In this document: positions 4,207 through 23,854 of the stretch, one piece after another | Layout of the letters: the number at the start of each line of letters is the position of its first letter | Numbering within the stretch: the stretch's first letter is position 1 | From: Phaeosaccion multiseriatum | Taxonomy: Eukaryota > Protista > Ochrophyta, other classes | Direction: 5' to 3' | DNA length: 64,000 bases | Assembly: GCA_965112735.1 (NCBI GenBank) | Contig: OZ218952.1 | Location: 1,240,001 to 1,304,000, forward strand | Program-made: the position numbers and the translations under genes | The notes under the pieces: model-generated | Told to the model about the DNA's origin: nothing | The model's input: only the letters and a program-made list of their open reading frames with translations | Database searches by the model: none

Positions 4207-4300
4207 ACTTGTTGATACATAGAACAAATAAGACGAGAAACGAACAAACTCCGGCTCCGGGCTGCCTTTGAGGCAATGTAATGTATCATCGTTCTTCCCC

Positions 4301-4517
4301 GTCCTTCTCTGCCATCTCCAGGGCGTCAAAGTCAAAGGTCCAGCGCTCGTTGCCGTCCACCTGCCCCAGCTTGAGCCCTTTACGCTGGGTCTGCGCCGGG
4401 GCCGACAAGAAGGGGCTGTAGATGGGGGTGGAGACGATGATGCCGGAGTTTTCCGGCACTGCACCGGTCGGTCCGTTGGTTGCGGGGGGAGGAATTGGGG
4501 CGCTCGTGAGTGGTGAT
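4301..4517 (-). pseudogene. Inverted partial duplicate of the PLP-enzyme gene (intron 3 end plus start of exon 4)
   Basis: Reverse complement of ~10081-10313 (encodes PENSGII.STPIYSPFLSAPAQTQR...NERWTFDFDALEMA), with a small deletion and retained intron sequence. Confidence 0.9.
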
Positions 4518-6520
4518 GCTTGTCACCCACTTTAGACTGAGGGACCGACAACCAAGCTGACTTGGCAGACCCCGTCATCATTGACTTACAACCATCCCCC
4601 AAACGGAGCACCCACCCACCCACTTGTCCTTTCTTCTGACTTGGCTGAGAGCCTCTTTCGGGTCCTGACACGCTGTCTCTCCATACTACTGGCTGCTATC
4701 GTAGCTACCACCAGGAGGCCGTCAACTTCTTCCAAAAGTGGCTGCGGCGAGCGAACATCTCCGCTGACGAGAAACTCCTCATGCTGGACCTGTGGAAGCA
4801 AGCGCGCTCCCTGCAGGGCGCACGACGGCACCTTCACGTGGGTTCATCTCATGAGCTTCCAACAAGGCAGATACACCATCTGCGCCGTCATGGGGTGGGC
4901 CTGCACCGACGGCTGCAACGGCCCCCGCGTCTGCTGCCTTGCCCTGGTGGCTGGGCACAGCTCTCGGAGTATAGGATGTTCCAGGACTTCCGCGACGAGC
5001 TCAAGTGCGTCGGGGAGATCCGCTACAGGGAGGGCGCCTTGAAGAAGGACAACACCAGGCGCCAGTACCTGAGTGTGCACTTCAAGGATCCACGAGGTAG
5101 GTATTTTCACCCCGCGCCTTGCCTTCTCTCCGCACCTCCTTCAGCAGACGAGCAGACGATCGCAATGTCCCACAACAAGAACGTAGCGTTTGGCTCCTCC
5201 TCGGCGGCCGAGGAGGGGGGAGATTGGCTGGCTCGAAGTTACTAAAGGGGGGAGGGTCGTGCCGCACAGCGTCAACCCTTCCGCGCCCCCCTCCTCCTCC
5301 GGGGCCAAGCCACCTTCAGCCTCAACAGCCACAAGGACTTCCCCCGCTTTTCCGAGGAGGCGTCGACAAAGGTCACCGACAACAACCCCGTCGGGGGGAA
5401 CAAGACCAACGCTGCTCCCCTCCGCGGATTTGAAAATCGACAAAACCAATGCTACATGGCGGCGGCGCTTCAGCGGGTAGCGGGTAGCTGAAGCGCCGCC
5501 GCCATGTAGCACTGATTCTGTCTATTTTCAAATCCGCGGAGGGGAGGAGCGTTGGTCTTGTCCGCCCCGACGGGGTTGTTGTCGGTGACCTTTGTCGACG
5601 CCTCCTCGGAAAGACGGGGGAAGTCCTTGTGGCTCTTGAGGCTGAAGTTGGCGCCGGAGGAGGAGGGGGGCGCGGAAGGGTTGACGCTGTGCGGCACGAC
5701 CCTCCCCCCTTTAGAAACTTCGAGCCAATCTCCTCCCTCCTCGGCCGCCGAGGAGGAGCCGTACGCTACGTTCTTGGTGTGGGACATTGTGATCGTCTGC
5801 TCGTCTGCTGAAGGAGGTGCGGTGAAGGAGGTGGGAGAGAAGGCAAGGCGCGGGGGTGAGAATACCTGCCTCGTGGATCCTTGAAGTGGACACTCAGATA
5901 CTGGCGCCCTCCCTGTTGCGGATCTTCCCGACGCACTTGAGCTCGTCGCGGAAGTCCTGGAACATCCGGTACTCCGAGAGCCCAGCCACCAAGGCAAGGC
6001 AGCAGACGCGGGGGCCGTTGCAGCTCTAGGCCGCTCGCCCACCCCATGAGGGCGCAGATGGTGTATCTGCCTTGTTGGAAGCTCACGAGATGAACCCACT
6101 TGAAGGTGCCGTCGAACGCCCTCCAGGGAGCGCGCTTGCTTCCACAGGTCCAGCATGAGGAGTTTCTCGTCAGCGGAGATGTTCGCTCGCCGCAGCTACT
6201 TTTGGAAGAAGTTGACGGCCTCCTGGTGGTACGATAGCAGTAGTATGGAGGCAGGAGGAAGAAGAAGATGATGATGATGAAGAAGGGCTTTGTGTTGTAA
6301 GTCAATGACAGCGGGTATTTGGGCCTCATACTGTAAGCAAATAGCACACAGGACGCCGAAAAAGGCTCTCAGTCAAGTCAGAAGAAAGGACAAGTGGTTG
6401 GGTGGGTGCTCCGTAGGGGGGATGGTTGTAAGCCAATGATAACGGGGTGTCAGGACCCCCAAAAGCCCCATTGCAGTACAGCTTGGTTGTCGGTCGCTCA
6501 GTCTAAAGTGGGGTGACAAG
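4518..6520. repeat. ~2-kb imperfect foldback (arms ~4518-5474 and ~5487-6520)
   Basis: Centre reads GCTACATGGCGGCGGCGCTTCAGC-gggtagcgggta-GCTGAAGCGCCGCCGCCATGTAGC. The arms align in reverse complement out to ttgtcacccactttagactgag / ctcagtctaaagtggggtgacaa. Confidence 0.92.
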
Positions 6521-7385
6521 TATTGCATACCGTGTACTGCTTGGCTGTGAAGGGGAAGGCATCGCCCACCTTTGCCCCGTCCAAGTCTTCGTCGGGCCTC
6601 GAACCAAATTCTCTGCGCCGCGCTGCGCCACTCGCGGTTCCACTCGAGCGACACAGGGTTAGCTTGCCTTCGAGCTCCACCGGCGCCTCGGGTGGTCTGA
6701 CATACTCGAGATTGGCGGTGAGCCATGCCGTCCTTGGTTCCCTGCGTAAAGATAGGGGCAGCCAGCCAAGAGACTTTCAGGGCAACGGGCAAAGGGAAAG
6801 GCAAACTACTGGCTACCCACCTTCTCCATCAACTGCTTGGCGTGGTACTGCTTACGGGGCAGCCCATCGTTGTCGTCGCCCTCCACCAGGACGTTGACCA
6901 AATGCTGCAGGGCGTCCCAGTCGGCGGCAAGAGGCAGCGCCTCCCGGATCTCGTCATCGCTCACGCCCTTATGAGAGCCCTGGGACGTTAGTGAGAGAGG
7001 CATGAGGGACAAGGAGGCGACTTGGGGGGGGCGGCGACTTTGCTGCTTACCTTGGGCTTTGGACGGACATTAAGTTCTCGCGCAGCCCTGTTCCTGCCGC
7101 CTCTCTGTGCAAACTATGGGGGGTCGGTCTTTGTCAGTCTCGCTCAACCAGAAGGTGTGTGTGCCACCAGCCCACCCCTCTACTGCGTCTCCAAGCCGTG
7201 TCCCGCCTAGAGGACACAGGCCTCTACTCTGCGTCACCACCCCGTCCCCCATATGCCTCTACTGCGTCTCCACCCCTCCCCCACATGCCCCTATTGTGGC
7301 CCGCCCAGGGACACAGGCCTCTACTCTCCATCTCCACCCCTTCCCCACATGCCTGCATCTACTCTGTCTCCACCCACCGCCCCCG
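5487..7385 (-). mobile_element. Internally deleted, inverted derivative of the 11.7-16.8 kb element
   Basis: Reverse-complement matches to ~12140-13070, ~13380-13545 and ~14640-15220, with the intervening parts missing. It includes the same GGGGTGGAGACAGAGTAGAGGC minisatellite. Confidence 0.8.
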
Positions 7386-7389
7386 CTCC

Positions 7390-8063
7390 TCACCTTGCTA
7401 GTTTTTGTGAAGGCATTGTCATTGCCCTACCGCTGCTGCTGCTCGTCGCCGTCGTCGAAAGACTCAGACCGCGCCCTCTTCGGTGGTCGTTGACGAAGGG
7501 CCGCCGCCTCCTGCTCACTGTCCAGCTCGTCGGCCACCGCCCCCCGGTTCGCTGTGCCCAAGAGAAGGGGCGCGCGCCCTCCGGGGGGAAGCTCCGGTGG
7601 ATGCGGATGCACTCCTCCAGCGACTTTCCCGCTCGGTCCCGGCGAAAGAGCTCGTCCTCTATGGCACAGGAGGGCTGTCCTCGGAGCTTGTCGAAATGCT
7701 GGGTGAACATCACCACGGGCTTTGGGAGGTACCACTCCAAAGCTGCCAGAGCAAAGCCGCCGCCGTAGGCATCGTTGGCCATTCCTAGCTCCGCCAGCGT
7801 GGCCCGCACCAGCTCCTCGTCACTCGCAAGCTGGCCTCCCGCGACAACCCGCACTGGCCTCAATAGCGCAAGAGGCGGCGCCTGCGGCACTCGCTCCACG
7901 ACCGCCACAACGTCCGAGCGAAGGCGGTGGGCCGCCTCCGAGTGCGATGCGAAAAAGCGCCCAAGTCGTCGCTGGGCCCACACGTGTTGATGAGGCTCAT
8001 GGGAGGCTCATGGAGTGCCATCATCCGCTTGGAGCATCGCAACAACCACGCTTCGTGCCACAA
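7390..8063 (-). pseudogene. Unidentified coding-like fragment, apparently frameshifted
   Basis: Overlapping ORFs 7860-8063 and 7390-7983 read like protein (EWYLPKPVVMFTQHFDKLRG...), but no family was recognised. Confidence 0.25.
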
Positions 8064-9291
8064 GTCGCGCCCGGGCGCTGGTGCTGGTGCTACTGGTCCT
8101 ACTGCTGCTGATGCGTTGAGACCGTCCGGAGCGAGGGAAGGGTGCGCTGCAGGGTGGGTGCGGCGAGGGAGGGGGGGCGCGGAGTAGCTTAAGAATAGGC
8201 GCAGGAGGCAGGGCTATCGATTGATCCAGGCTATCGTTTGTGGAGGGAGGAGTACAAGCACCTCCTCCCCTTGCTTGCGAAAACGGCGTTTTCATCCCCC
8301 CCCCCCCGTTCTCACCTCCGGAGCTTGGGGTCGCTAGGGATCCTGGGACTGAGGGGCACATTTGTCGGTCGTTACTTGCCGTGGGGACTCGTGCCTGCGG
8401 CCATGAGGTCCTCCCTGCTGTCGATCGGGATCTGCGGAGGGGCGGGGAGGGCGGAAGAAGGGCAGGGAGTGGGCGAAGAGTTGTCACAGCGGCGTCAGGC
8501 ACGAACGTAGGGCAGTGAGGAATGTTCGCAGGAATCAGGGCTAGCGAATGGTTCAGGCTTGTGGAGGGAGAAACCGAGGGGTGCGCACCACGTCGGTGCC
8601 TGCCTGTGGTAGCAACTTGAAGTAACGGGCAGCGTAGCAGCAGTGCGCGTGACAAGTTTCTGCCAGCGAGATCCGTATAGAGGCAAGCGGCAGCGGAAAA
8701 GACGCATACGAGTCGGGGCTATGCCTTGGTGATGTCTAGTCCCGCGGCCAAGGCATATTGACTGAAAACGATGGCCCCTAACCACTTGCAGCGCCGCCCC
8801 CCACCACTTGTGTGCTTTGAGAAAAAAAGAAGTAGACCTGCTGGTGCTCCGGCGGAGACCGAAAGAAGCGGAGCGCCAGACCTTGTGCGGTGATTCCCAC
8901 CCCTGACGGGCACCCTGCCCGGTCGTCGCGTGCCGGCGGGAGCTCCCGTCACGTCGACTAACCGTGGGGCTGCAGCCGCTCGAGTCGCCGCTTTGTCTCC
9001 ACAGTGAGCTCGGTCCGGGACGGCTAGCAGTCTGAAACGTGCGTGGGGCTTTCCCCTATCGGCCTCGGCTCGTGTAGAGCTGCTCTGCTGTGCCTTGCAT
9101 CTCCAAGATCGGCGCTATCCCCAAGATCGGCCCCAGCGCAGAAAAAAAAAAAAAAAAAAAAATGAACTGAAACTCAAGCTAGCTGTTACTTTTAGCCTCT
9201 CCTCCCCATCCCTCTCCCCCTCTCCCCTCTCCCCTTTCCTTCAGGGTTCAGGCCGGCGCGTGGATCCCCGACACCCGCGCGGCTAACCAAG

Positions 9292-11062
9292 ATGGCCGCG
9301 AAACTGGGCGTATTTGCGGTACTCTTGTGCGCAGCAGCTGGGCATGTACAGGCTTTTATTCACCCCACCACGCCCTTTCATCGTCTTCCAAGGTTCGCAG
9401 GGGAAGCAGCCATGGTAAACGACGAGGAGGGTGGGACGCGGTTTGACTTTAGCACCATGCCAGACCGCAAGAACACCGGGGCGCTCAAGTGGGACAAGTA
9501 CAAGGGGAGGGACATCATTCCATTGTGGGTAGCGGACATGGACCTCCCCACATGCCCTGCGGTGCTCGAGGGCTTGCAGAGCTACATTGCGAAGGGAGAT
9601 GGTAAGCAGGCGGGGTTGGGAGGGCATCGTGGCTGGATTGACTGGTGGACCATTGCGTGCAAAAGCGCGAGACTTGTATATAGATTGAGGATCCATCGCT
9701 TAATTCAAGGCTCCTCTTTGGCTGGCTCCTTTCCTCATGTGGACCCTGCCCGCTGCTCTTGTTCGCCCTGGCTGCTGCAGCTGTGTTCGGCTACACGCTC
9801 CCCACGAGTGAGGCCTACGCGGCGGTAAGAAGCTACATGGAGGAGCGCCATGGAGCGCAGGTGCAGGACAGATGGACCCTCTTCTCCCCAGGTACGGAGG
9901 GAGTGGGTTTAAGCGTAAGGATCGAGGGAGGAGCTAGCTGAGTTGGTTGCCCCTCTGCCCTCCATGACGTGTATATACTGCCTTGGTTCTCCCCCCCCAC
10001 ACCAACACAGGCGTGGTTCAGTCCCTCAACTTGTGCTGCAAAGTAGGTGAGTGAAGCCCTGTCGTTCCTCGTTCCTCCGCAATCACCACTCACGAGTGCC
10101 CCAATACCAATCCTCCCCGACCGACCGCCGCAGTGCCGGAAAACTCCGGCATTATCGTCTTCACCCCCATCTACAGCCCCTTCTTGTCGGCCCCGGCGCA
10201 GACCCAGCGTAATCTCATCCAAGTAGGGCTCAAGCTGGGGCAGGTGGACGGCAACGAGCGCTGGACCTTTGACTTTGACGCCCTGGAGATGGCAGTAGAG
10301 GGGCGCAAGGACAAGGTGCAGCAGGACGAGGAGGGGGAGCTAAAGCCCGTGAGCATGCTGCTGCTGTGCAATCCGCACAACCCCGTGGGGCGAGTCTTTA
10401 CGGAGGGGGAGCTGAGTCGACTTGGCAAGTGGTGCGAGAGCCACGACATTACCATCGTGTCGGACGAGATCCACTCCGACCTTGTGTTGGAGCCCGAGGC
10501 CGAGGGGCGTCACGTCCCCATGCTGGCTGTGGACGGGGGACGGTTTCAAGACCGAACCATTCTCCTCAACGCCCCCAGCAAGACGTTCAACACCGCGGGG
10601 CTGTGCTGCAGCTTCCTTGTCATCCCCAATCACGCGATTCGGAGAAAGTTCCTCCGCGCGGCCTCGGGCATTATCACGCAAAACCCCGCGCTGGGCTACG
10701 TCGGACTCGTCGCTGCCTTTACTCAGGGGTGGGAGTGGCAAGCAGCCCTCCTCACGCACTTGCGTGGCAACCGGGACGCCGTCTACGCCTTTGTCGAGGA
10801 GCGCCTGCCGGAGCTGCGCATGCGACCCATGCAGGCAACATACTTGGCCTGGCTGGACGTTACTGCGCTGGGCTGGCGGGACCCCGTGCTGACCTTTGAG
10901 CGCCACGGCGTGGGCCTCACGGACGGGCGCTTCTTCGCCGGCGAGCAGCACGTGCGCATCAACTTTGGCTGCCCGAGGGACGTGCTCATGGAGGGCTTGC
11001 GGCGCATGGAGGCAGCCGTCGTGGCCGAGCACAGGCAGCCCAAGGCGGCTGCAGCGGAGTGA
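9292..11062 (+). CDS. PLP-dependent class I/II aminotransferase, MalY/PatB (cystathionine beta-lyase-like), with predicted plastid bipartite presequence; exons 9292-9601, 9781-9891, 10011-10046, 10134-11062
   Basis: Motifs IPLWVADMD, FGYT, LCNPHNPVGRVF, IVSDEIHSDL, APSKTFN, QATYLAWLD and VRINFGCPR. Splice phases are consistent. The N-terminus is a signal peptide followed by 'VQA-F'. Confidence 0.93.
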
Positions 11063-12136
11063 CCGGGGTATGGCAGGGGGTGGGGGGATGGGAGTACCAG
11101 CAGCAGCAGGACGTCCGCTTTCATGCACCATTGATTGCTGCGCCCCGCCTTCCTCGCCTGGGGGAGGCGAGGGGCACGTCCATGCGTGTGCGAAGCAGGG
11201 GTGCAACGGCTCACCTCGGCCCGAGCAAGGAGGGATTGTTTCAGTGGCTGGGCATCGCGTCTGAGCAGGAACGAACAAGCTTTTTCTCTCGGCCGTTGCC
11301 GCAGTGGAAGCGACGAAGAGCAGCAGCTTGAAGTGGCCAGCCAGGCAGCTTTCCGTTGGTGGATTGTGGGAAGGGCACCACCACCAATGGATTCACCGCA
11401 CACTTTGCTGCACGGAGCTTCGTGGGCAGTGTGTGAGAGCAGTGTGCTGCAGCGGCGCTTTCCTGCACGGAGTTTGGTGGGCAGTGGAGAAAGAAAGGGA
11501 CTGTCTGGGTGTCAGGCACACACACACACACACACACACCAGTAAACACTTCCGCCAATGAGGCTTTGGTACCCCCCCCGAGTGGCGAGAAGGAGTCATG
11601 AGAGTGTCTCATCCGTGAGTCGAAGGATTTTCTCATTCGTGCTTGAGTGTGTGTGCATAGGAGGACGCCTGGTTTGATGCGTCGCGCTTGCACACACGTG
11701 GGTGAGTTTGAGTCGTGGGACTTTCTCATCCTTGGTTTTTGGCAGCAGCATACGGCGGCAGCACTGTGTGTAGAGCTTTAGTAGGCGAAACCGCTTGAGT
11801 TGCGTCGGGACACGCACGCAATAGTTTACTGTAGTTCAGGGGATGTTGGAAGGCTGACGACAGTAACACGTCAATGGCCCAGGCCCAGGCAGATGGCCCG
11901 TTTCTCCCGCTTGGTCGTTTAGGATGGCTCAGGGATCATGCGTTGCTATTACCGTGTCCTATCCCATGTGGAGAGCAACACGACTCTTTACAGTATTAAA
12001 AAATGATGGAGTGCGACGACGGTTACTTCCCCACACCTACGATTCCTGACACCGGTGCTGACGCCAAACACCACATCCCGTCCTCCTCCTCCTGTACATT
12101 GCTCCCACTCCCACTATTGCCGGGTCCACAAACCCC

Positions 12137-12505
12137 TGGGGTGGGGTGGAGACAGAGTAGAGGCGTATGGGGGTGGGGTGGAGACAGAGTAGAGGCATAT
12201 GGGGGTGGGGTGGAGACAGAGCAGAGGCAGGCATATGGGGGTGGGGTGGAGACAAGAGTAGAGGCATATGGGGGTGGGGTGGAGACAGAGCAGAGGCGTA
12301 TGGGGGTGGGGTGGAGACAGAGTAGAGGCAGGCATATGGGGGTGGGGTGGAGACAAGAGTAGAGGCATATGGGGGTGGGGTGGAGACAAGAGTAGAGGCA
12401 TATGGGGGTGGGGTGGAGACAGAGTAGAGGCAGGCATATGGGGGTGGGATGGAGACGCAGTAGAGGGAGGCATATGGGGGTGGGGTGGAGAAACAGAGTA
12501 GAGGC
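12137..12505 (+). repeat. ~30-35-bp G-rich minisatellite (GGGGTGGGGTGGAGACAGAGTAGAGGCATAT)
   Basis: About 11 tandem units read directly. A degenerate inverted copy lies at ~7180-7380. Confidence 0.9.
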
Positions 12506-12635
12506 CTGTGTCCTCTAGGCGGGACACAAAGTAGAGGCATGTGGGGATGGCTTGGAGATGCAGTAGAGGGGTTGGCGGGGACACCTTCTGGTTGAGCGAG
12601 ACTGACAAAGACCGACCCCCCCACACTTGGCACAG

Positions 12636-15600
12636 AGAGGCAGGAACAGGGCTGCGCGAGAACTAAATGTCCGTTCAAAGCCCAAGGTAAGCAGCAAAGC
12701 AAGTCGCCGCCTCGTCGCCTCCTTGTCCCTCATGCCTCTCTCACTATCGTCCCAGGGCTCTCATGGGGGCGTGAGCGATGCCGATATCCGGGAGGCGCTG
12801 CCTGTTGCCGCCGACAGGGACGCCCTGCAGCATTTGGTCAACGTCCTGGTGGAGGAGGACGACGATAACGTCGGGCTGCCCCGTAAGCAGTACCACGCCA
12901 AGCAGTTGATGGAGAAGGTGGGTAGCCAGTAGTTTGCCTTTCCCTTTGCCCTGTGCCCTGTGCCCTTTGCCCTGAAAAGTCTCTTGGCTGGCTGCCCCTC
13001 AGGCTCGTACACGATTGCCCAACCGTCTGCTGAGGGGGCCAATCTTTACGCAGGGAACGAAGGACAGCATGCCTGCGCCGCTCCACGTGAGTGAGGAGGC
13101 CCTCCTGGCTGCCAAGCGCCCCACGCTTCAGCATGTGCCCCACCAACAGGTTGGTGTGCAGCTAGTTTTTCGTTCCTTGTCTTTGAGCGACCCCAACGCA
13201 AGTGGCTGACGACTCTCGCTCACCCGCAGATTGAGTGCCCCAAGTGCCGCATCAAGCTCATGGCGGGGGCGGAGGACGAGGGGGTCCTGCTCCGGAGCTT
13301 GCAAGCCCTGTGGCACCGGCATACGCATGGGCACCGCTTTGGCGACGTCGTCTTCTCGCATTGCACCCTCGGGGACCCCCAGCTCACCGCCAATCTCGAG
13401 TATGTCAGAACAGCACCCGAGGCGCCGGTGGAGCTCGAAGGCAAGCTACCCCGTCCGTCGCTCGAGTGGAACCGCGAGTGGCGCAGCGCGGCGCACAGAA
13501 TTTGGTCCGAGGCCCGAGCGAGAGACTTGAACGGGGCAAGGGGGGGCGGCGGTGTCATCCCCTTGTATGGCAGTGTCATTGTCAACTCGGGCACGACGCT
13601 CAAGCAGCGGGTGCACAACACTGCCCTTCTCGATGTCAGCGTAGCCGACGCGCTGCCCGGAGGAGAGGAGGAGAACGCCAAGGAGGCCGAGTTTTTCAGC
13701 ATTCTGTTTGCCACTGGAATGGACACGCTCCGGGAGCAGCAGAAGGAAGCACAATCGGCAGGCGGGACCCAAGGGGGCGTCCGGACATGCGGGGTGGTCC
13801 GGGGGATGACATGTGGTCCGGAGCGCCATCTTGAGAGCACAAGACCCGCCATCTTTGAGCTACCTTCGACGTCCTTCCTGACGCGCTTCGACTTCCAGAC
13901 AGACATGGTCGCGAGGGGCATGAACGCCTTTGGCCTCTTGTGCACGGCCCAGAACTGGAACGACAAGGGCTTTCTCATGAACCTGAAGGTCCCCAAGATC
14001 TTGTACCCCAGAGAGCTGTTCGTCTTTCTCAGCAACAAGACGCGGTATACATTCTGGAAAGTCAAGGAGGGCAACAAGAAGAGGGGCCGGGACGCCAACA
14101 GCAACGACTGCGGCGAAGACGATGACGTAGACGTGGATGTGATGCTCCCGGGGGAGGAGGACGGGGTGCTTGACGAGAGAAACATGATCCCCGACGACGA
14201 CCTGCGGCTGGAGGAGCAAGACGAGGGGGGTAGCAGGGATCGCGACCTGCAGCTGGACCTCGACGACGATCGCGACCTGCAGCTGGAGGAGCAAGACGAG
14301 GGGGGTAGCAGGGATCGCGACCTGCAGCTGGACCTCGACGACGATCGCGACCTGCAGCTGGAGGAGCAAGACGAGGGGGGTAGCAGGGATCGCGACCTGC
14401 AGCTGGACCTCGACGACGATCGCGACCTGCAGCTGGAGGAGCAAGACGAGGGGGGTAGCAGGAGTAGGACGCAGCCGCGAGATCCCGTGCCCCAGAACGG
14501 AGAAGACCAGACCACTGGTCGCGGCCTTATCAAGTACCTTCGCGACGTCGGCATGTCAGAAGAGGCGTGCGCCACATTCGCACTGGCCATGTCGCGCCAG
14601 GGCATCAACGTGTACCAACACAACGGCCCCAGCGAGCCCGGGGATGCCTTCCCCTTCAGAGCCAAGCTGTACTCGGTAAGCAATGGACTGCCTGTCACCT
14701 CAGCCACTGTAGACTGAGCGACCGAAAACCTACCAAGCTGCCTTCCTCACCCCGTTATCATTGACTTTGCATGTCTTGAGCCTTTTTTCGGGGTCCTGAC
14801 ACGCTGCCTCTCCATACTACTGGCTGCTATCGTACCACCACCATCAGGAGGGCGTCAACTTTTTTCAAAAGTGGCTGCGGCGAGCGAACATCTCCGCCGA
14901 CGAGAAGCTCCTCATGCTCGACCTGTGGAAGCGCGCTCCCTGCAGGGCGCACGACGGCACCTTCACGTGGGTTCATCTCATGAGCTTCCAGAAGGGCAGG
15001 TACACCATCTGCGCCCTCATGGGGTGGGCCTGCACCGACGGCTGCAATGGCCCCCGCGTCTGCTGCCTTGCCTTGGTGGCTGGGCTCTCGGAGTACCGGA
15101 TGTTCCAGGACTTCCGCGACGAGCTCAAGTGCGTCGGGAAGATTCGGTACTGGGAGGCCGCCTTCAAGAAGGACAACACCAGGCGCCAGTGCCTGAGTGT
15201 CCACTTCAAGGATCCACAGGTAGCTACAACCTCACCATCTTGCGTGCTTCGCTCCTCGGACTCGCTGACTGACGTGCGTCATCCACTGCCGTCGTTCGCT
15301 TCGCTCTCTTGCTTGTTTCCGACCACCAGACGTTCTACTGCATCTGCTGCCTCTTCGGCAATGATTGCAGCAGCTCAAGGACCAGCTTTGACTGTGTGAA
15401 GCGTCTCTTGGCGCTTCGCACCATGGCTGGAAACCCAGAGGGCGACCTCTTCGACAGCGAGTCCTTCGCCCTGGCCTTCCTCGTCACCTTCGCCGCCCAA
15501 GTCTATGGGGACGGGTCCATCGGGAAGGGCGAGGGCGACGGCACAAGTCCAGCCTCCTTCCTCATCTGTCTTACCGCCTCCGACTATGGAAGTCTCACCT

Positions 15601-15968
15601 TCGCCCAGAGGCTTCTGCCTCTGGCCATCCGGAAACTCACTGGCGACGAGCTGGAGTTCAGCGGTGGCATCGACGGAAACCTCAAGTACCACGAGGAGAC
15701 CAAGGCCTTGATCGGCGTCGTCTACAGCCTGCGTTGGAGCGGCAAGCGAGACTGGCTGGTGATCAACTACGCCTTGAATAAGGCGTGGGAAGACGCGGGG
15801 GTGATGTTCCGCCAGCTCGAGAGGAAGCGGCGCGACGTGAGGCGTGAGGACATTGACGCGATACCGTTCACAGCAAGGCGCGCCAGCACAACCTTCGGGA
15901 GCGACTTTGCTCCGTACGTTGGGGTCGTGCCCCCAGCAGCCGCAGCAGCAGCAGGGGCAGACGTGTAG
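12636..15968 (+). CDS. Spliced protein with N-terminal CxxC..H..H motif and C-terminal double-motif LAGLIDADG-like domain; exons 12636-12686, 12756-12917, 13003-13149, 13230-14675, 14848-15219, 15330-15968 (start codon not identified)
   Basis: Five GT-AG introns, all phase 0, give 2817 nt with no internal stop. Motifs LMGWACTDG and FAAQVYGDG(SI) are followed by 'VYSLRWSGKRD'. Confidence 0.6.
14199..14461 (+). repeat. In-frame 75-bp tandem repeat, ~3.5 copies (DLQLEEQDEGGSRDRDLQLDLDDDR)
   Basis: Near-identical units at 75-bp spacing (e.g. acgagggggg at 14221 and 14296). Confidence 0.95.
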
Positions 15969-17019
15969 TGCGGCCATTGGTGATACGGCGTCATCATCCG
16001 TCAGTGGCTGTCCCATCCACTGAGCAAGCATGGGTACAAAGGAGAAGGAGAAGGAGAGAAGAGGGCTGGGGTTGGGGTTGGCAACAAGAAGAAGTGGGAG
16101 AAGCAAGAAGGGGGGGTGCAGGAGGGGAAGGTGAAATAGGGCGCACGGGCGGGAGGAGCAAAGTAGGAGGGAATCACACATGGCGAGTCCGGGATGTGGA
16201 GGGGTTTGTGGACCCGGCAATAGTGGGAGTGGGAGCAATGTAGAGGAGGAGGAGGACGGGATGTGGTGTTTGGCGTCAGCAACGGTGTCAGGAATCGTAG
16301 GTGTGGGAGGGGGTATGGTGGAGCCGCCTTTGCACTTGAGGAAGTAACCGTCGTCGCATCCATCGTATTGTACAGAAAGCAGAGTCTCGTGGACAAGAAT
16401 TTTGGTTGTTGATACTGTAAAGAGTCGTGTTGCTCTCCACATAGGATAGGAGTAGACGCATGGACGAGGTAATAGCAACCCCAAAGCCAGCCGCAGCCAG
16501 CCTTGTATCTATTGGCATTATCCCTGAGCCATCCTAAACGACCGACCTGCTGGGAGATGAGTGAGAAACGGGCCACGCCACCCGTTCTCACCGTATCTGC
16601 GTGGGCCTGGGCCATTGACATAGTACTGACTTTCAACATCCTTCAGCCTTCCTCCCCCTTCCAACATCCCCTGAACTAAACTATTGCGTGTCCCCACGCA
16701 ACGCAACGTAGGCGGTTTCGCCTACTAAAGCTCTACACACAGTGCTGCCGTATGCTGCTGCCAAAAACCAAGGACGAGAAAGTCCCACGACTCAAACTCA
16801 CCCACGTGCGTGCGCGCGCGATTGAGGGAGTGGGTGAATGAAGGAGAGGTGACAAGGGGAGGGAGCTCCCGCTCTCACTCCCTCGCTTGCATACTCACTC
16901 ACTCACGACCGTATTCACTCACTCGCTCCGTCACTCTCATCAACTCGCTACTTCACCCACACACACTCCCTCACTCCATCCCTCTCTCCCTTTGCATCAG
17001 TCTCCCTCGACCTGTCTCT

Positions 17020-18425
17020 CCCTCCCGCAAAATGGCATATCTAGCTATGGCCCGCCTTTGGCTCTGACGGATTGGTAGGGAGACAATGTTTTACCAGTAG
17101 TGCCATCGCAGTTTTTAGGGAGAGGCCATCGTCGTGCCTGACTGACAGTCTCATTGCCCTATCTACTGACTGCCTCACTGACTGACTTGTAGGTGATTGC
17201 GAGTTCACAGACATGGACCTGGGCGGTCTTGGAGCGGGCCCCGGCCGGGCGGACACGGCCCATGACCCCAAGCAATGTTCTCTCTGAGCTCGCAGCTGCT
17301 CAGCCTCTATCAGGTCAGTCAGTCAGGTAGTCCGTCGGTCAGTCGGTCAGTCCGTCGGTCAGTCCGTCAGTGAGGCAGTTGAGCAAGTGGCTCAGTCAGT
17401 CGGTCAGTCAGTCGGTCAGTCGGTCAGTCAGTCAGGCAGTCAGTCAGTCTGCCAGGCACCCCCGCCAGGCAGTCGGTCAGGCAGTCGGCCCGTGACTGAG
17501 TCAGACCCCCAATCGAACTCTATGAGTCTCTGTCTCCTCCGTCTGCCACCATCCTCTCTATACTACTAGTCCGACCAAGGTTTTGGAGTGCGAGTGGACG
17601 ACGAGTCAGACTGTGGGCGGAGGAGGCGGCCTCCCCAGTAGCATGGGTCAAGAACGGCAGCGCGCAGGTGGGGCCGCAGGACTTTAGCTGGAGACAAACC
17701 CAGCAAGGAGCGAGGGGGAGGAGGAGGCTATGGGCAGTACCGCGGCGTACCTTTCCCAGAGCCAGGACACCTCCTTGCTCATGCGTAACATTGGCGGAGA
17801 CAGCGGTGCCGGCGGTGGTGGAGGCGTGACGGGGCGGCGCTACACAGCAGTCGCATCGAGGGGGGTGGTACGGGCGAAGCAAGGCGCCACGGCAAAGGAC
17901 GGAAGACCGCCGAAGGACGCCATGTTCAGGTACGTTCGGGTTTGTGAGGTTTTACAAATGTAGAGGTGGTTTGGGTGGACCTGTGACCTGTTTCGATGGC
18001 TGGTTCAAACACTTGTTTGGATGGAGGCGGGGGGAGGGGAGGTTGTCGCACGCACCGGTCGTAGAATAGTGCAGAGTACGCTGTTCTAGTACAAGCAGTT
18101 TGCGTAAAGTGGCACTCAAGTGAAATTTCGCCCCTCCTCCCTCCCCCTCCTTTTGTCCGGCACACGCAGGCGGTGCGTATCGGCAGGGGGAGCTCCCGGA
18201 CATTGAGATTCCTGTCAGGGACATACTAAAGCCCCTGCAGCACCTCGCCATGCTCCATGGAGGAGTGGCAAAGGAGCTCTTCGTGCAGTACTTCAGCCGT
18301 CTATACGTCGGGGGAGGAGGAGGAGGAAGCGCGCTTCCAGGTGTGGGGACGGGGCGTGGGCAGCACCAGCAGGATCACCAGTTGGTGGTAGCTACAGCAG
18401 CAGCAGTTGGTGATACACCAGCATG
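17020..18425 (+). pseudogene. PRKDC: Internal fragment of DNA-PKcs with introns and frameshifts
   Basis: 18175-18306 encodes AYRQGELPDIEIPVRDILKPLQHLAMLHGGVAKELFVQYFSRL, matching the DNA-PKcs 'YRxGDLPDIQI...PLQ...AKxLF' block. Upstream pieces read DCEF..., PMTP..MF and S/T-Q-rich sequence. No flanking exons of this very large gene are in the window. Confidence 0.72.
17312..17490 (+). repeat. (CAGT/CGGT)n intronic microsatellite
   Basis: Direct reading. Confidence 0.85.
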
Positions 18426-18736: not shown

Positions 18737-21700
18737 TCGACCCTGGCCAAGATTACGGTGTGCGTCCCGGCCGTAATCAGTAAACAGCTCTCCCTCTCTC
18801 CCTCCCTCCCTGCCTGCCTCCCACCCTCCCTGCCTCCTTCCCTCCTCCCTCCCTCCCTTCCTCCCTCCCTCCCTCCCTCCCTCCCTGCCTCCCTCCCTGC
18901 CTCCCACCCTCCCTGCCTCCTTCCCCCCTCCCTCCCTACCTTCCTCCCTCCCTCCCTCCCTCCCTCCCTGCCTGCCTGCCTCCCTGCCTCCCTCCCTCCC
19001 TGCCTCCCTCCCTCCCTCCCTCCCTCCCTCCCTCCCTCCCTCCCTCCCTCCCTCCCTTCCTTCCTCCCTCCCTCCCTCCCTGCCTCCCTCCCAGCCTCCC
19101 TCCCTCCCTCCCTCCCTCCCTCCCTTTCTCCCTCCCTCCCTCCCTCCCTCCCTCCCTCCCTTCCTCCCTCCCTCCCTGCCGGCCTCCCTCCCTCCCTCCC
19201 TCCCTGCCTCCCTCCCTGCCTGCCTCCCTGCCTCCCACCCTCCCTCTCTCCCTCCCTCCCTGCATGCCTCCCTCCCTCCCTCCCTCCCTCCCTCCCTCCC
19301 TCCCTCCCTCCCTCCCTCCCTCCCTCCCTCCCTCCCTCCCTCCCTCCCTCCCTCCCTCCCTCCCTCCCTCCCTCCCTCCCTCCCTCCCTCCCTCCCTCCC
19401 TCCCTCCCTCCCTCCCTCCCTCCCTCCCTCCCTCCCTCCCTCCCTCCCTCCCTCCCTCCCTCCCTCCCACCCTCCCTCCCTCCCTCCCTCCCTCCCTCCC
19501 TCCCTCCCTCCCTCCCTCCCTCCCTCCCTGCCTGCCTCCCACCCTCCCTGCCTCCCTGCCTCCCTTCGACCCTGGACAAGATTACGGTAAGCGTCCCGGT
19601 CGTAATCAGTAATCAGCCCTCCCCCTCTCCCTCCCTCCCTCCATCCCTCCCTCCCTCCCTCCCTCCCTCCCTCCCTCCCTCCCTCCCTCCCTCCCTCCCT
19701 CCCTCCCTCCCTCCCTCCCTCCCTCCCTGCCTGCCTCCCTGCCTCCCACCCTCCCTGCCTCCGTGCCTCCCTCCCTCCCTCCCTCCCTCCCTCCCTCCCT
19801 CCCTCCCTCCCTCCCTGCCTCACTGCCTGCCTTCCTCCCCCTCTCCCTCCCTCCCTCCATCCCTCCCTCCCTCCCTCCCTCCCTCCCTCCCTCCCTCCCT
19901 CCCTCCCTCCCTCCCTCCCTCCCTCCCTCCCTCCCTCCCTCCCTCCCTCCCTCCCTCCCTCCCTCCCTGCCTGCCTCCCTGCCTCCCACCCTCCCTGCCT
20001 CCGTGCCTCCCTCCCTCCCTCCCTCCCTCCTCCCTCCCTCCCTCCCTCCCTGCCTCACTGCCTGCCTCCCTCTCTCCCTCCCTCCCCCCATCCCTCCCTC
20101 CCTCCCTCCCTGCCTACCTCCCTGCCTCCCACCCTCCCTGCCTCCGTGCCTCCCTCCCTCCATCCCTCCTCCCTCCCTCCCTCTCTGCCTCCCTGCCTGC
20201 CTCCCTGCCTCCCTACCTGCCTGCCTGCCTCCCACCCTCCCTGCCTCCCTGCCTCCCACCCTCCCTGCCTCCCTGCCTCCCTCCCTCCCTCCCTCCCTCC
20301 CTCCCAGCCTCCCTCCCCGCCTCCCTCCCTCCCTCCCTCCCTCTCTCCCTCCCTCTCTCCCTCCCTCCCTCCCTCCCTCTCTCCCTCCCTCCCTCCCTCC
20401 CTCCCTCCCTCCCTCACTCACTCACTCACTCCTTCCCTCCCTCCCTCCCTTCCTCCCTCCCTCCCTCCCTCCCTCCCTCCCTGCCTGCCTGCCTGCCTCC
20501 CTGCCCTCCACCCTCCCTGCCTCCCTGCCTCCCTGCCTCCCTCCCTCCCTCCCTCCCTCCCTCCCTCCCTCCCTCCCTCCCTCCCTCCCTCCCTCCCTCC
20601 CTCCCTCCCTCCCTCCCTCCCTCCCTCCCTCCCTCCCTGCCTCCCTGCCTGCTGCCTCCCTGACTCCGTGCCTCCCTGCCTCCCTCTCTCCCTCCCTCCC
20701 TCCCTCCCTCCATCCCTCTCTCCCTCCCTCCCTCCCTCCCTCCCTCCCTCCCTCCCTCCCTCCCTCCCTCCCTCCCTCCCTCCCTCCCTCCCTCCCTCCC
20801 TCCCTCCCTCCCTGCCTGCCTCCCACCCTCCCTGCCTCCTTCCCTCCTCCCTCCCTCCCTTCCTCCCTCCCTCCCTCCCTCTCTCCCTCCCTCCCTCCCT
20901 CCCTCCCTCCCTCCCTCCCTCCCTCCCTCCCTCCCTCCCTCCCTCCCTCCCTCCCTCCCTCCCTCCCTCCCTCCCTCCCTCCCTCCTCCCTCCCTCCCTC
21001 CCTCCCTCCCTCCTTCCCTCCCTCCCTGCCTCCCTCCCTGCCTGCCTCCCTGCCTCCCACCCTCCCTCTCTCCCTCCCTCCCTGCATGCCTCCCTCCCTC
21101 CCTCCCTCCCTCCCTCCCTCCCTCCCTCCCTCCCTCCCTCCCTCCCACCCACCCTCCCTCTCTCCCGCCATCCCTCCCTCCCTCCCTCCCTCCCTCCCTG
21201 CCTGCCTCCCACCCTCCCTGCCTCCCTGCCTCCCTTCGACCCTGGACAAGATTACGGTAAGCGTCCCGGCCGTAATCAGTAATCAGCCCTCCCCGTCTCC
21301 CTCCCTCCCTCCATCCCTCCCTCCCTCCCTCCCTCCCTCCCTCCCTCCCTCCCTCCCTCCCTCCCTCCCTCCCTCCCTCCCTGCCTGCCTCCCTGCCTCC
21401 CACCCTCCCTGCCTCCGTGCCTCCCTCCCTCCCTCCCTCCCTCCTCCCTCCCTCCCTCCCTCTCTGCCTCACTGCCTGCCTCCCTCTCTCCCTCCCTCCC
21501 CCCATCCCTCCCTCCCTCCCTCCCTGCCTACCTCCCTGCCTCCCACCCTCCCTGCCTCCGTGCCTCCCTCCCTCCATCCCTCCTCCCTCCCTCCCTCTCT
21601 GCCTCCCTGCCTGCCTCCCTGCCTCCCTACCTGCCTGCCTGCCTCCCTGCCTCCCACCCTCCCTGCCTCCCTGCCTCCCACCCTCCCTGCCTCCCTGCCT

Positions 21701-23854
21701 CCCTCCCTCCCTCCCTCCCTCCCAGCCTCCCTCCCCGCCTCCCTCCCTCCCTCCCTCCCTCTCTCCCTCCCTCCCTCCCTCCCTCTCTCCCTCCCTCCCT
21801 CCCTCCCTCCCTCCCTCCCTCCCTCCCTCACTCACTCACTCACTCCTTCCCTCCCTCCCTCCCTTCCTTCCGTCCCTCCCTTCCTCCCTCCCTCCCTCCC
21901 TCCCTCCCTGCCTGCCTGCCTGCCTGCCTCCCTGCCCCCCACCCTCCCTGCCTCCCTGCCTCCCTGCCTCCCTCCCTCCCTCCCTCCCTCCCTCCCTCCC
22001 TCCCTCCCTCCCTCCCTCCCTCCCTCCCTCCCTCCCTCCCTCCCTCCCTCCCTCCCTCCCTCCCTCCCTCCCTCCCTCCCTCCCTGCCCCCTGCTGCCTC
22101 CCTGACTCCGTGCCTCCCTGCCTCCCTCTCTCCCTCCCTCCCTCCCTCCCTCCATCCCTCTCTCCCTCCCTCCCTCCCTCCCTCCCTCCTTCCCTCCCTC
22201 CCTCCCTGCCTCCCTGCCTGCTGCCTCCCTGACTCCGTGCCTCCCTGCCTCCCTCTCTCCCTCCCTCCCTCCCTCCCTCCATCCCTCTCTCCCTCCCTCC
22301 CTCCCTCCCTCCCTCCCTCCCTCCCTCCCTCCCTCCCTCCCTCCCTCCCTCACTTCTTCCCTCCCTCCCTCCCTCCCTTCCTCCCTCCCTCCCTCCCTCC
22401 TTCCCTGCCTGCCTCCCTCCCTCCTCCCTCCCTCCCTCCCTCCTTCCCTGCCTGCCTCCCTCCCTCCCTCCCTCCCTCCCTCCCTCCCTCCCTCCCTCCC
22501 TCCCTCCCTCCCTCCCTCCCTCCCTCCCTCCCTCCCTGCCTGCCTCCCACCCTCCCTGCCTCCTTCCCTCCTCCCTCCCTCCCTTCCTCCCTCCCTCCCT
22601 CCCTCCCTCCCTCCCTCCCTCCCTCCCTCCCTCTCTCCCTCCCTCCCTCCCTCCCTCCCTCCCTCCCTCCCTCCCTCCCTCCCTCCCTCCCTCCCTCCCC
22701 TCCCTCCCTCCCTCCCTCCCTCCCTCCCTCCCTCCCTCCCTCCCTCCCTCCCTCCCTCCCTCCCTCTCTCCCTCCCTCCCTCCCTCTCTCCCTCCCTCCC
22801 TCCCTCCCTCCCTCCCTGTCTTCCTCCCTCCCTTACTCCCTCCCTCCCTTACTCCTTCCCTCCCTCCCTCCCTTCCTTCCTTCCCTTCCTTCCTCCCTCC
22901 CTCCCTCCCTCCCTCCCTCCCTCCCTCCCCCCCTCCCTCCCTCCTTCCCTCCCTCCCTCCCTTCCTTCCTTCCCTCCCTTCCTCCCTCCCTCCCTCCCTC
23001 CCTCCCTCCCCCCCTCCCTCCCTCCCTCCCTCCCTCCCTCCCTCCCTGCCTGCCTCCCTGCCTCCCGCCCGCCCTCCCTCCCTGCCTGCCTGCCTCCCTC
23101 CCTCCCTCCCTGCCTCCCTGCCTGCCTCCCTGCCTCCCTCCCTCCCTGCCTCCCTGCCTCCCTCCCTCCCTGCCTCCCTCCCTCCCTCCTTCCCTGCCTC
23201 CCTCCCGACCTCCCTCCCTCCCTCCCTCCCTCCCTCCCTCCCTCCCTCCCTCCCTCCCTCCCTCCCTCCCTCCCTCCCTCCCTCCCTCCCTCCCTCCCTC
23301 CCTCCCTCCCTCCCTCCCTCCCTCCCTCCCTCCCTCCCTCCCTCCCTCCCTCCCTCCCTCCCTCCCTCCCTCCCTCCCTCCCTCCCTCCCTCCCTCCCTC
23401 CCTTCCTCTCTCCTTCCTCCCTCCCTCCCTGCCTTCCTGCCTCCCTCATTTGTTCCCTCCCTCCCTCACTTACTCCTTCCCTCCCTCCCTCCCTTCCTTC
23501 CCTCCCTCCCTTCCTCCCTCCCTCCTCCCTCCCTCCCTCCCGCCCTCCCTCCCTTCCTCCCTTCCTTCCTCCCTCCCTCCCTCCCTGCCTCCCTCCCTGC
23601 CTCCCTCCCTGCCTCCCTCCCTCCCTGCCTGCCTGCCTGCCTCCCTGCCTCCCAGCCACCCTCCCTGCCTCCCTGGCTGCCTCCCTCCCTCCCTGCCTGC
23701 CTTCCTGCCTCCCTCCCTCCCTCCCTCCCTCCCTCCCTCCCTCCCTCCCTGCCTCCCTCCCTCCCTCCCTCCCTCCCTGCCTGCCTGCCTGCCTCCCTGC
23801 CTCCCAGCCACCCTCCCTCCCTCCCTCCCTCCCTCCCTCCCTCCCTCCCTGCCT
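18737..23854 (+). repeat. ~5.1-kb (CCCT/CCTG)n polypyrimidine satellite with higher-order structure; resumes at 25965-26240
   Basis: Direct reading. Variant landmarks (cactcactcact, tgactccgtg, ctgcatgc) recur in order. Confidence 0.95.

Follow-up and report, generated by a model that had tools for sequence, protein, structure and literature searches.

In the stretch of Phaeosaccion multiseriatum DNA analysed here (the window, 64,000 nucleotides), two inverted repeats enclose one spliced gene, which by its composition appears to be real and nuclear and is predicted to encode approximately 912 residues with host-like codons. Our preferred explanation is a tentative one, to which we give somewhat less than an even chance: the locus would be a lineage-restricted nuclear gene cassette of five exons, in which the C-terminal 260–300 amino acids form a very diverged double-motif LAGLIDADG-type domain. 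The locus is a candidate, and the LAGLIDADG reading of it is unproven.

The four introns (12918–13053, 13150–13229, 14676–14847 and 15220–15329) all have GT-AG borders and lie in phase 0, and retention of any one of them would cause an in-frame stop or a frame shift. Their GC content is 53–59%. The GC3 values of the five exons range from 0.78 to 0.89 and correspond to the codon signature of the host; for example, GC1/GC2/GC3 values of 0.67/0.42/0.81 were obtained versus 0.67/0.43/0.84 for an exon of the neighbouring aminotransferase gene. A sequence-only reading of the same DNA had proposed six exons joined by five phase-0 GT-AG introns into 938 codons. Four of these introns are sound, but the proposed first exon (ending at 12686) contains no ATG in its frame, and the upstream ATG at 12667 belongs to another frame. 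The in-frame ATG is located at 12732, within what had been taken for the first intron, which leaves five coding exons with 912 codons (Table 1). The ATG and the splice sites of exon 1 are also kept in a copy of the gene at 6745–7170. The sequencing runs that contain the locus seem to be DNA-like, since their contigs pass uninterrupted across the introns. The product of exon 3 has a Cys/His-rich start, followed by an unassigned stretch and an acidic repeat of 25 amino acids (3.5 copies), which is encoded by a 99%-identical 75-nt repeat at 14198–14462. The two peptides quoted previously, LMGWACTDG and FAAQVYGDG, are present in exons 4 and 5, respectively, and are indeed split by an intron, the last of the four.

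Table 1. Features of the repeat-flanked gene and of its partial copies in the window.
Feature	Position	Strand	Remarks
Pseudogene copy A (3′ end of the intron preceding the motif-1 exon, and motif-1 exon)	4649–5103	+	90% identical; frameshifting indels +4, +5, +1
Degraded, internally deleted gene copy	5863–7375	-	Tandem array, exons 1-2, pieces of exon 3, intron before the motif-1 exon, motif-1 exon
Left inverted-repeat arm	11682–12137	.	456 nt; outer end sharp
Tandem array of a G-rich unit	12138–12505	+	Unit of 32-37 nt, ~11 copies; inside left arm, upstream of gene
Coding exon 1	12732–12917	+	From first in-frame ATG; GC3 0.81
Coding exon 2	13054–13149	+	GC3 0.78
Coding exon 3	13230–14675	+	482 aa
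Coding exon 4 (motif-1 exon)	14848–15219	+	124 aa; LAGLIDADG-like motif 1 at 15016-15042
Coding exon 5	15330–15968	+	212 aa and stop; LAGLIDADG-like motif 2 at 15489-15515
Right inverted-repeat arm	16200–16821	.	622 nt

None of the exons matched a family in Pfam, PHROGs or NCBIfam, even at E ≤ 10, in agreement with the earlier statement that no recognisable transposase lies between the repeats. A sequence search of the PDB with exons 4 and 5 gave no match at E ≤ 10, and phmmer found no relatives of exon 5 among 1.84 billion representative proteins. Word-seeded homologue searches with exons 3 and 4 were empty, also when exon 3 was searched again with its non-repetitive part alone, and no relative was detected in the viral contigs scanned or, using exons 5 and 4, in the metagenome contigs scanned. 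In the Atlas language-model search, exon 5 as a whole was not recognised, and exon 4 was weakly RRM-like, at chance level. By these comparisons, the encoded protein appears to be an orphan restricted to its lineage. In the literature, we found no account of algal LAGLIDADG elements that are nuclear and bounded by repeats. The lack of a family match or homologue in any search speaks for an ordinary orphan gene, neither nuclease nor mobile element, with motifs that are LAGLIDADG-like by chance and a C-terminal domain of some other alpha/beta fold. We consider this a serious possibility, though not a probable one.

Proteins of the LAGLIDADG superfamily cleave DNA site-specifically or act as intron RNA maturases. 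They contain two motifs approximately 90–150 amino acids apart (one in homodimers), in each of which the helix terminates in a conserved acidic residue, and their fold consists of two alpha-beta-beta-alpha-beta-beta-alpha half-domains packed via the motif helices. In the algal protein, the starts of the two motifs are 121 amino acids apart, Asp-Gly is kept in both, and the LAGLIDADG-like region stops approximately 30 amino acids before the C-terminus. The spliced C-terminus was compared by hhalign with a profile of 38 phage double-motif proteins, of which nine out of ten sampled members belong to Pfam LAGLIDADG_3 or LAGLIDADG_1; this profile recovers the solved structures of I-AniI, I-MsoI and I-CreI. 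The resulting alignment (score 29.15, P = 5.8 × 10−4, probability 29%) placed both motifs in register, with half 1 on half 1. The same score was reached by one of 400 shuffled sequences (empirical p ~0.003) and by at most six of 276 natural decoys, a set contaminated by true family members. When both motifs were masked, the score fell to approximately the 95th percentile, and the alpha2-beta3-beta4 stretch of half 1 kept the same alignment register. Taken separately, exon 4 aligned to the first half of the profile over 54 columns (P = 0.014, probability 3%) and exon 5 to the second motif over 23 columns only (P = 0.012, probability 3%). Exon 5 was the top scorer among the 17 coding-like ORFs of the window. 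Among the 100 named Atlas clusters nearest to half 2, 46 occurred in sets with 11–20% LAGLIDADG-family members, all at very low scores.

A second template class, comprising single-motif or first-motif proteins, did not align with half 1, and its match to half 2 was limited to the 11-residue motif. Both motifs scored negative with a subfamily motif matrix, for which the chance rate is approximately 10−3 per residue, and HMM ranks of 21 and 46 were obtained among approximately 2000 decoys. Comparison of one half with the other gave no signal of an internal repeat (z = 0.3). The silence of Pfam is weak evidence against LAGLIDADG, since even verified phage members reach E values of only 10−5 to 10−9 in it, and one member has no match. 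A P-value of about 10−3 is not compelling either, because the choice of this sequence from an entire genome was itself based on the motifs.

For the idea of a chance resemblance in an ordinary orphan gene, one can cite the rate at which single motifs match by chance, the marginal score after masking and the failure of the second template class. Against it stand the collinear, in-register arrangement of both motifs at an empirical p of ~0.003 and the register that is kept in the masked alignment. The two-motif LAGLIDADG assignment made previously is a candidate one: both motifs are present with their Asp and the profile alignment is in register, but standard database searches are silent and the masked score is marginal. 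Overall, the profile signal for LAGLIDADG seems to be modest, motif-dominated and in register. It suggests that the C-terminal domain might have the LAGLIDADG fold, for which we see a chance somewhat short of even.

Single-sequence AlphaFold predictions, made separately for exons 4 and 5, reached pLDDT values of 38.5 and 49.7, and the models are unusable. At this low confidence, each half shows its motif followed by a helix and then two strands, as would suit LAGLIDADG, but motif 1 was modelled as a strand instead of a helix. Foldseek searches with the low-confidence exon models gave no match. We also considered a DDE/RNase H reading of the motif-1 region; judged by the predicted strand order of the low-confidence model, it fits less well than LAGLIDADG.

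The surrounding genome is GC-rich. A homing element of the intron, intein or WHO type occupies a fixed target site within a host gene, and alleles free of it are cleaved. The algal gene is intergenic, located 620 bp downstream of the stop codon of the aminotransferase gene, and is adjoined by a palindrome. Other copies of the gene in the window are limited to frameshifted fragments at 4.6–7.4 kb, which lack the repeats. Between exon 4 and copy A, 6, 3 and 14 substitutions were counted at codon positions 1, 2 and 3, respectively (chi-square p ~0.015), and the motif-1 exon is less diverged from its pseudo-copy than the flanking intron. The degraded, internally deleted copy keeps introns and contains the tandem array of the G-rich unit once more (7220–7381), and has no inverted-repeat arm. 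A retrocopy origin of the fragments could be ruled out, as intron sequence is kept. One pseudo-copy is adjoined by a fragment of the aminotransferase gene, namely the start of its last exon in inverted orientation.

Contigs of the gene body had the depth that marks single-copy sequence in the run concerned (approximately 38 in run X1). There was no second full copy in the window, and no empty site was seen at loose contig ends. The earlier description of the element as multicopy finds no support in the single-copy depth and in a window with only frameshifted fragments devoid of repeats. These fragments are not products of a moving repeat-bounded unit. Single-copy depth, the lack of a target-site duplication (see below), nearby copies without repeats and host-like codon usage would all be in line with an ordinary orphan gene, and the flanking repeats would then be left over from unrelated repeats or from an inverted duplication at this place. 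However, pseudogene debris and a palindrome are unusual neighbours for a simple host gene, and the sharp ends of the repeats also argue against this reading.

The inverted repeats of ~455 and ~620 bp reported in the sequence-only reading are present at the places given there and have sharp ends. Alignment of one arm with the reverse complement of the other showed identity at 409 of 448 aligned positions (91%) and ten indels, 182 nt in total, nearly all of which represent surplus sequence in the right arm. Approximately 170 nt of the right arm form blocks that are absent from the left arm, including a short hairpin-forming segment common to a high-copy repeat. The summed k-mer depth of 16468–16651 was approximately 60 times the baseline, whereas the contig across this segment has single-copy depth. 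Similarity between the arms ends abruptly at 11682 and 16821, and a search for an extension of the inverted repeat beyond these positions revealed low-complexity matches only. Elsewhere in the window of 64 kb, neither the KDZ region nor any other part matched the arms. No target-site duplication of 3 to 11 bp was detected at any offset within 6 nt of the ends; the longest perfect direct repeat has at most 4 bp and the best 8-bp candidate agrees at five of eight positions. The outer 50–180 nt of the repeat showed a depth of approximately three times the baseline, and some contigs diverge at 11730, which might reflect one additional copy of the repeat end.

Such a further terminus, together with long, sharp-ended terminal inverted repeats, a subterminal tandem array and an interior filled by a single large gene, would suit an autonomous DNA transposon of the cut-and-paste type, from a superfamily that is either undescribed or diverged beyond recognition. 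The repeats would then be the binding sites of a 912-residue transposase with a DNA-binding Cys/His part at its N-terminus and a catalytic C-terminal part. The strands, instead of a helix, that AlphaFold places at motif 1 with low confidence would also be compatible with this, and the Asp of motif 1 and a Lys-Lys-Asp-Asn approximately 45 residues later can be read as the first two DDE residues. We nevertheless regard a transposon as quite unlikely. Neither a target-site duplication nor a transposase family was found, the depth of the gene body is that of a single copy without a second full one, and the internally deleted copy has no repeats. Moreover, the arms are 9% diverged with many indels, and the model, at low confidence, has one strand from the Asp to the helix, as opposed to the beta1-beta2-beta3-alpha order of RNase H-like folds.

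Least probable, and in our view distinctly improbable, is a non-autonomous cargo (Pack-type) element, or a gene trapped between inverted repeat copies, that was moved in trans, e.g. by the KDZ/Zisupton-like gene at 38.5–44.9 kb: the repeats do enclose a host-like gene without a transposase signature, but they match nothing else in the window, KDZ region included, and the single-copy locus has no target-site duplication. With no target-site duplication, a single-copy gene body and nearby fragments without repeats, the previous interpretation as a mobile element is weak, and so is the case for mobility of the repeat-bounded unit.

According to the cassette explanation that we prefer, the gene would be bracketed by old, imperfect inverted repeats of 0.5 kb and would encode a Cys/His-rich and acidic N-terminal region preceding the putative LAGLIDADG-type domain of 260–300 amino acids, which might bind or cleave DNA. 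The gene family may spread at low copy number via break-triggered events at the DNA level (repair, ectopic recombination and foldback synthesis), not by cut-and-paste of a repeat-bounded unit, and this low-copy spread would leave rearranged pseudogene fragments nearby. In a more far-reaching form, which we consider unlikely, the gene would belong to a family of nuclear LAGLIDADG nucleases that is confined to algae, contains spliceosomal introns and is still selfish. Repair synthesis at the breaks made by these nucleases would copy the gene along with pieces of neighbouring host genes. Over several such rounds, this could have given rise to the pseudogene debris, the duplicated aminotransferase fragment, the palindrome and the inverted repeats, and the locus would represent a WHO-like homing system of independent origin, distinct from introns, inteins and transposons.

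To our knowledge, free-standing nuclear LAGLIDADG genes have so far been found in budding yeasts (HO, WHO) and in plants, where they have been domesticated for splicing in organelles. An independent, intron-bearing nuclear LAGLIDADG family in an alga, if true, would mean that homing-type selfish genes also occur in a further lineage of eukaryotes, and might be a source of new rare-cutting nuclease scaffolds. Should the protein turn out not to be of the LAGLIDADG type, the locus would come down to a constrained orphan gene with old flanking repeats, of local interest only.

Long-TIR DNA transposons (MULE or hAT-like, and their Pack-type derivatives) resemble the locus in their half-kilobase, sharp-ended inverted repeats, the subterminal tandem array, the one gene in the interior and a nearby derivative that has lost internal sequence. 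They differ in that the algal locus has no target-site duplication or recognisable transposase, that no second copy with the same ends is present in the window and that the deleted derivative lacks the repeats. With the double-motif LAGLIDADG endonucleases (LAGLIDADG_3/LAGLIDADG_1; I-AniI, I-MsoI, I-CreI), the algal protein shares two nine-residue motifs approximately 120 amino acids apart that end in Asp-Gly, a collinear weak profile alignment and, as far as predicted, a short beta hairpin after each motif, then a helix and another hairpin. It differs from them by the absence of a significant sequence match, by an N-terminal extension of approximately 600 amino acids and by being Cys-rich, and its gene is nuclear, with spliceosomal introns and host codons, and is situated in neither an intron nor an intein.

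The nuclear location is less exceptional than had been stated, as nuclear-encoded LAGLIDADG proteins are known in plants, e.g. the organellar splicing factor OTP51 with seven PPR and two LAGLIDADG motifs (PMC9275481). Like the algal gene, with its LAGLIDADG-like motifs, OTP51 is a nuclear, intron-containing gene with two such motifs, whereas the algal protein has no PPR or other domain by Pfam and no detectable homologues, and its gene is accompanied by pseudogene debris and flanking inverted repeats. In the yeast HO and WHO proteins, an intein-like region, in which a protein-splicing domain surrounds the endonuclease domain, is followed by a C-terminal zinc finger (PMC7282813); by Pfam, the algal protein contains neither domain, and its Cys/His region is N-terminal. 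WHO elements also lack inverted repeats, unlike the repeat-flanked algal gene, and the host fragment duplicated in the alga is the inverted start of the last exon, not the 3′ end. Nevertheless, HO and WHO are, like the algal gene, nuclear and free-standing, and the algal locus has in common with these elements an intact gene just downstream of a housekeeping gene, pseudogene copies in the vicinity and a fragment of the housekeeping gene beside a pseudo-copy.

The window has a GC content of approximately 60%; its introns are GT-AG, its coding sequence is strongly biased in GC3, and its DNA is read as nuclear and algal. All five exons of the orphan gene enclosed by the inverted-repeat arms show GC1/GC2/GC3 values near those of the adjoining class I/II aminotransferase exon (0.67/0.43/0.84; Pfam PF00155), and its introns have a GC content of 53–59%. 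This is strong compositional evidence that the orphan gene is a real, host-adapted coding gene. Each of the four introns contains an in-frame stop or would shift the frame if read through. The sequence-only reading had proposed six exons with about 938 codons. The four GT-AG phase-0 introns of that model were retained; its first exon, ending at 12686, was discarded, as it has no ATG in frame (that at 12667 lies in another frame), and an in-frame ATG at 12732 yields 912 aa instead. The four sequencing runs holding the locus behave as DNA, since their contigs traverse the introns at flat depth. A 495-aa minus-strand ORF (13220–14707) antisense to the large exon (exon 3) was rejected as a gene because its high-GC codon position is in the wrong phase; it is a by-product of the GC-rich coding sequence. 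The large exon also has an in-frame 75-nt tandem repeat at 14198–14462, with 99% identity over 3.5 copies; the unit codes for 25 aa of acidic character, and the array looks like a very recent expansion.

Features of the orphan gene, its repeat arms and its fragmentary copies (window positions)
Feature	Position	Strand	Remarks
Left inverted-repeat arm	11682–12137		MAFFT alignment
Tandem array, 32–37-nt unit	12138–12505		Immediately inside left arm
Intron	12918–13053		GT-AG, phase 0
Intron	13150–13229		GT-AG, phase 0
Intron	14676–14847		GT-AG, phase 0
Intron	15220–15329		GT-AG, phase 0
Right inverted-repeat arm	16200–16821		MAFFT alignment
Degraded gene copy	7375 to 5863	minus	Internally deleted, frameshifted, introns kept
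Second motif-1 exon copy (pseudo-copy A)	4649–5103	plus	

The motif-1 exon (coding exon 4, with the candidate motif LMGWACTDG) differs from its fragmentary second copy, pseudo-copy A, at 6, 3 and 14 sites of codon positions 1, 2 and 3, respectively (124 sites each), and has diverged less from it than the adjoining intron. This pattern fits purifying selection, but GC3-related mutation bias could be part of the cause.

By all searches performed, the protein is an orphan. Pfam, PHROGs and NCBIfam gave no match at E ≤ 10, which bears out the earlier statement that no DDE transposase is recognizable. A PDB sequence search gave no match either, phmmer with the last exon (coding exon 5) against 1.84 billion representatives returned 0 matches, word-seeded searches with the large exon and the motif-1 exon were empty, and scans of viral and metagenome contigs showed no relative.

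For a targeted LAGLIDADG test, natural phage and viral genes with the canonical motif provided 38 double-motif ORFs as templates; nine of ten sampled ORFs matched Pfam LAGLIDADG_3 or _1 with modest E-values and one had no match. The profile built from the 38 ORFs retrieves the solved I-AniI, I-MsoI and I-CreI structures. Both motifs fell in register when the spliced C-terminus was aligned to this profile by hhalign (score 29.15, P 5.8 × 10−4, probability 29%). Of 400 shuffles, only 1 attained this score; among 276 natural decoys no more than 6 did, and that set still includes true family members. By profile score, the last exon ranks top among the 17 coding-like ORFs of the window. Alone, the motif-1 exon aligned to the template first half (hhalign P 0.014, 54 columns) and the last exon to the second motif (hhalign P 0.012, 23 columns). 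Masking of both motifs left the alpha2-beta3-beta4 stretch of the first domain half in the same register, at a score only around the 95th percentile.

In plain HMM searches with approximately 2000 shuffles for comparison, the real sequence came 21st and 46th, a second template class gave no signal past the 11-residue motif, and with a subfamily motif matrix the chance rate of comparable matches is about one in 1000 residues. No internal similarity was found between the two domain halves. Single-sequence AlphaFold models were unusable (pLDDT 38.5 and 49.7); in them the expected helix and subsequent hairpin follow each motif, but motif 1 itself is a strand, and a Foldseek search with them returned nothing. 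In an Atlas search, the second half was far from everything (best score 0.30); as a weak lead, 46 of its 100 nearest named clusters fall in sets with 11–20% LAGLIDADG-carrying members. The LAGLIDADG assignment of the sequence-only reading has a modest, mainly motif-driven signal in its favour from the in-register two-motif alignment, and none from database matches, the second template class or a usable structure model. Because the sequence was chosen for its motifs out of the whole genome, we give a predicted LAGLIDADG fold of the C-terminal region somewhat less than an even chance.

The inverted repeats are real and lie at exactly the ends originally claimed. The arms are identical at 409 of 448 aligned positions (91%) and differ by ten indels totalling 182 nt, almost all of them extra blocks in the right arm. 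Their ends are sharp, with nothing but low-complexity similarity outside 11682 and 16821. No target-site duplication was found at the element ends, and within the window the arms match no other sequence. Raised summed depth is limited to 16468–16651 in the right arm and, in the left arm, to its outermost part. At 16468–16651, summed k-mer depth is approximately 60× baseline, yet the contig across it has single-copy depth; this short hairpin-forming segment is common to a high-copy genome repeat. A short stretch a little outside the left arm (11600–11660) is similar to the terminal motif of that arm (GAGTCG..GGA.TTTCTCAT), possibly what is left of another terminus. A (GTCA)n / 12-nt array (17314–17488) lies shortly to the right of the element, and 18790–23854 is a 5-kb (CTCC)n array of approximately 1270 units with extreme strand skew.

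The element had also been described as multicopy, which was not supported. Gene-body contigs are at the single-copy depth of the run (approximately 38 in X1, one run holding the locus), and the only other gene copies in the window are the degraded copy and pseudo-copy A. Neither has inverted-repeat arms, so these fragments were not made by moving a repeat-bounded unit. Together they form a near-perfect 1.6-kb palindrome (4679–6250; 87% between arms) composed of two inverted motif-1 exon copies and their downstream sequence. At its centre (approximately 5470–5560, minus strand), a peptide GFENRQNQCYM..LQ resembles the Cys box of ubiquitin-specific proteases, without a Pfam match. The aminotransferase (last exon 10133–11062, PF00155) is situated between inverted copies of the orphan family (5863–15968), the degraded one upstream on the minus strand and the intact one downstream on the plus strand. 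The intact gene lies 620 bp downstream of the aminotransferase gene, with the degraded copies on that gene's other side. Furthermore, 4300–4517 is an inverted, 85% identical copy of 10082–10305, a 224-bp fragment comprising the end of the aminotransferase intron and the first part of the last exon, and directly adjoins pseudo-copy A.

Provided that the fold is real, the protein keeps both of the Asp residues that bind metal in the LAGLIDADG family, which would fit an active nuclease better than a maturase. Because terminal inverted repeats to our knowledge play no part in known LAGLIDADG homing, and there is no target-site duplication, transposase or second full copy, spread or rearrangement by break repair is favoured over cut-and-paste transposition. 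On that view the inverted repeats would either have arisen as by-products of foldback repair or be what remains of an unrelated carrier.

The repeat-bounded LAGLIDADG-like gene is a genuine candidate that the evidence neither proves nor refutes, and our literature search turned up no account of an element of this kind. Long-TIR DNA transposons have the inverted repeats in common with it, but it shows none of their other defining features. The orphan gene resembles double-motif LAGLIDADG endonucleases, a likeness only, and is a candidate member. Nuclear LAGLIDADG splicing factors of plants, for example OTP51 (PMC9275481), also belong among the closest known kinds. Nuclear HO and WHO homing genes show similar genomic behaviour but a different architecture: the orphan protein has no detected intein-like region and its Cys/His region is N-terminal, and WHO elements, unlike the orphan gene, lack inverted repeats. 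Nevertheless, the layout loosely recalls the yeast WHO clusters (PMC7282813), with a housekeeping gene between an intact copy downstream and degraded ones on the other side, and an inverted fragment of that host gene next to a pseudo-copy.
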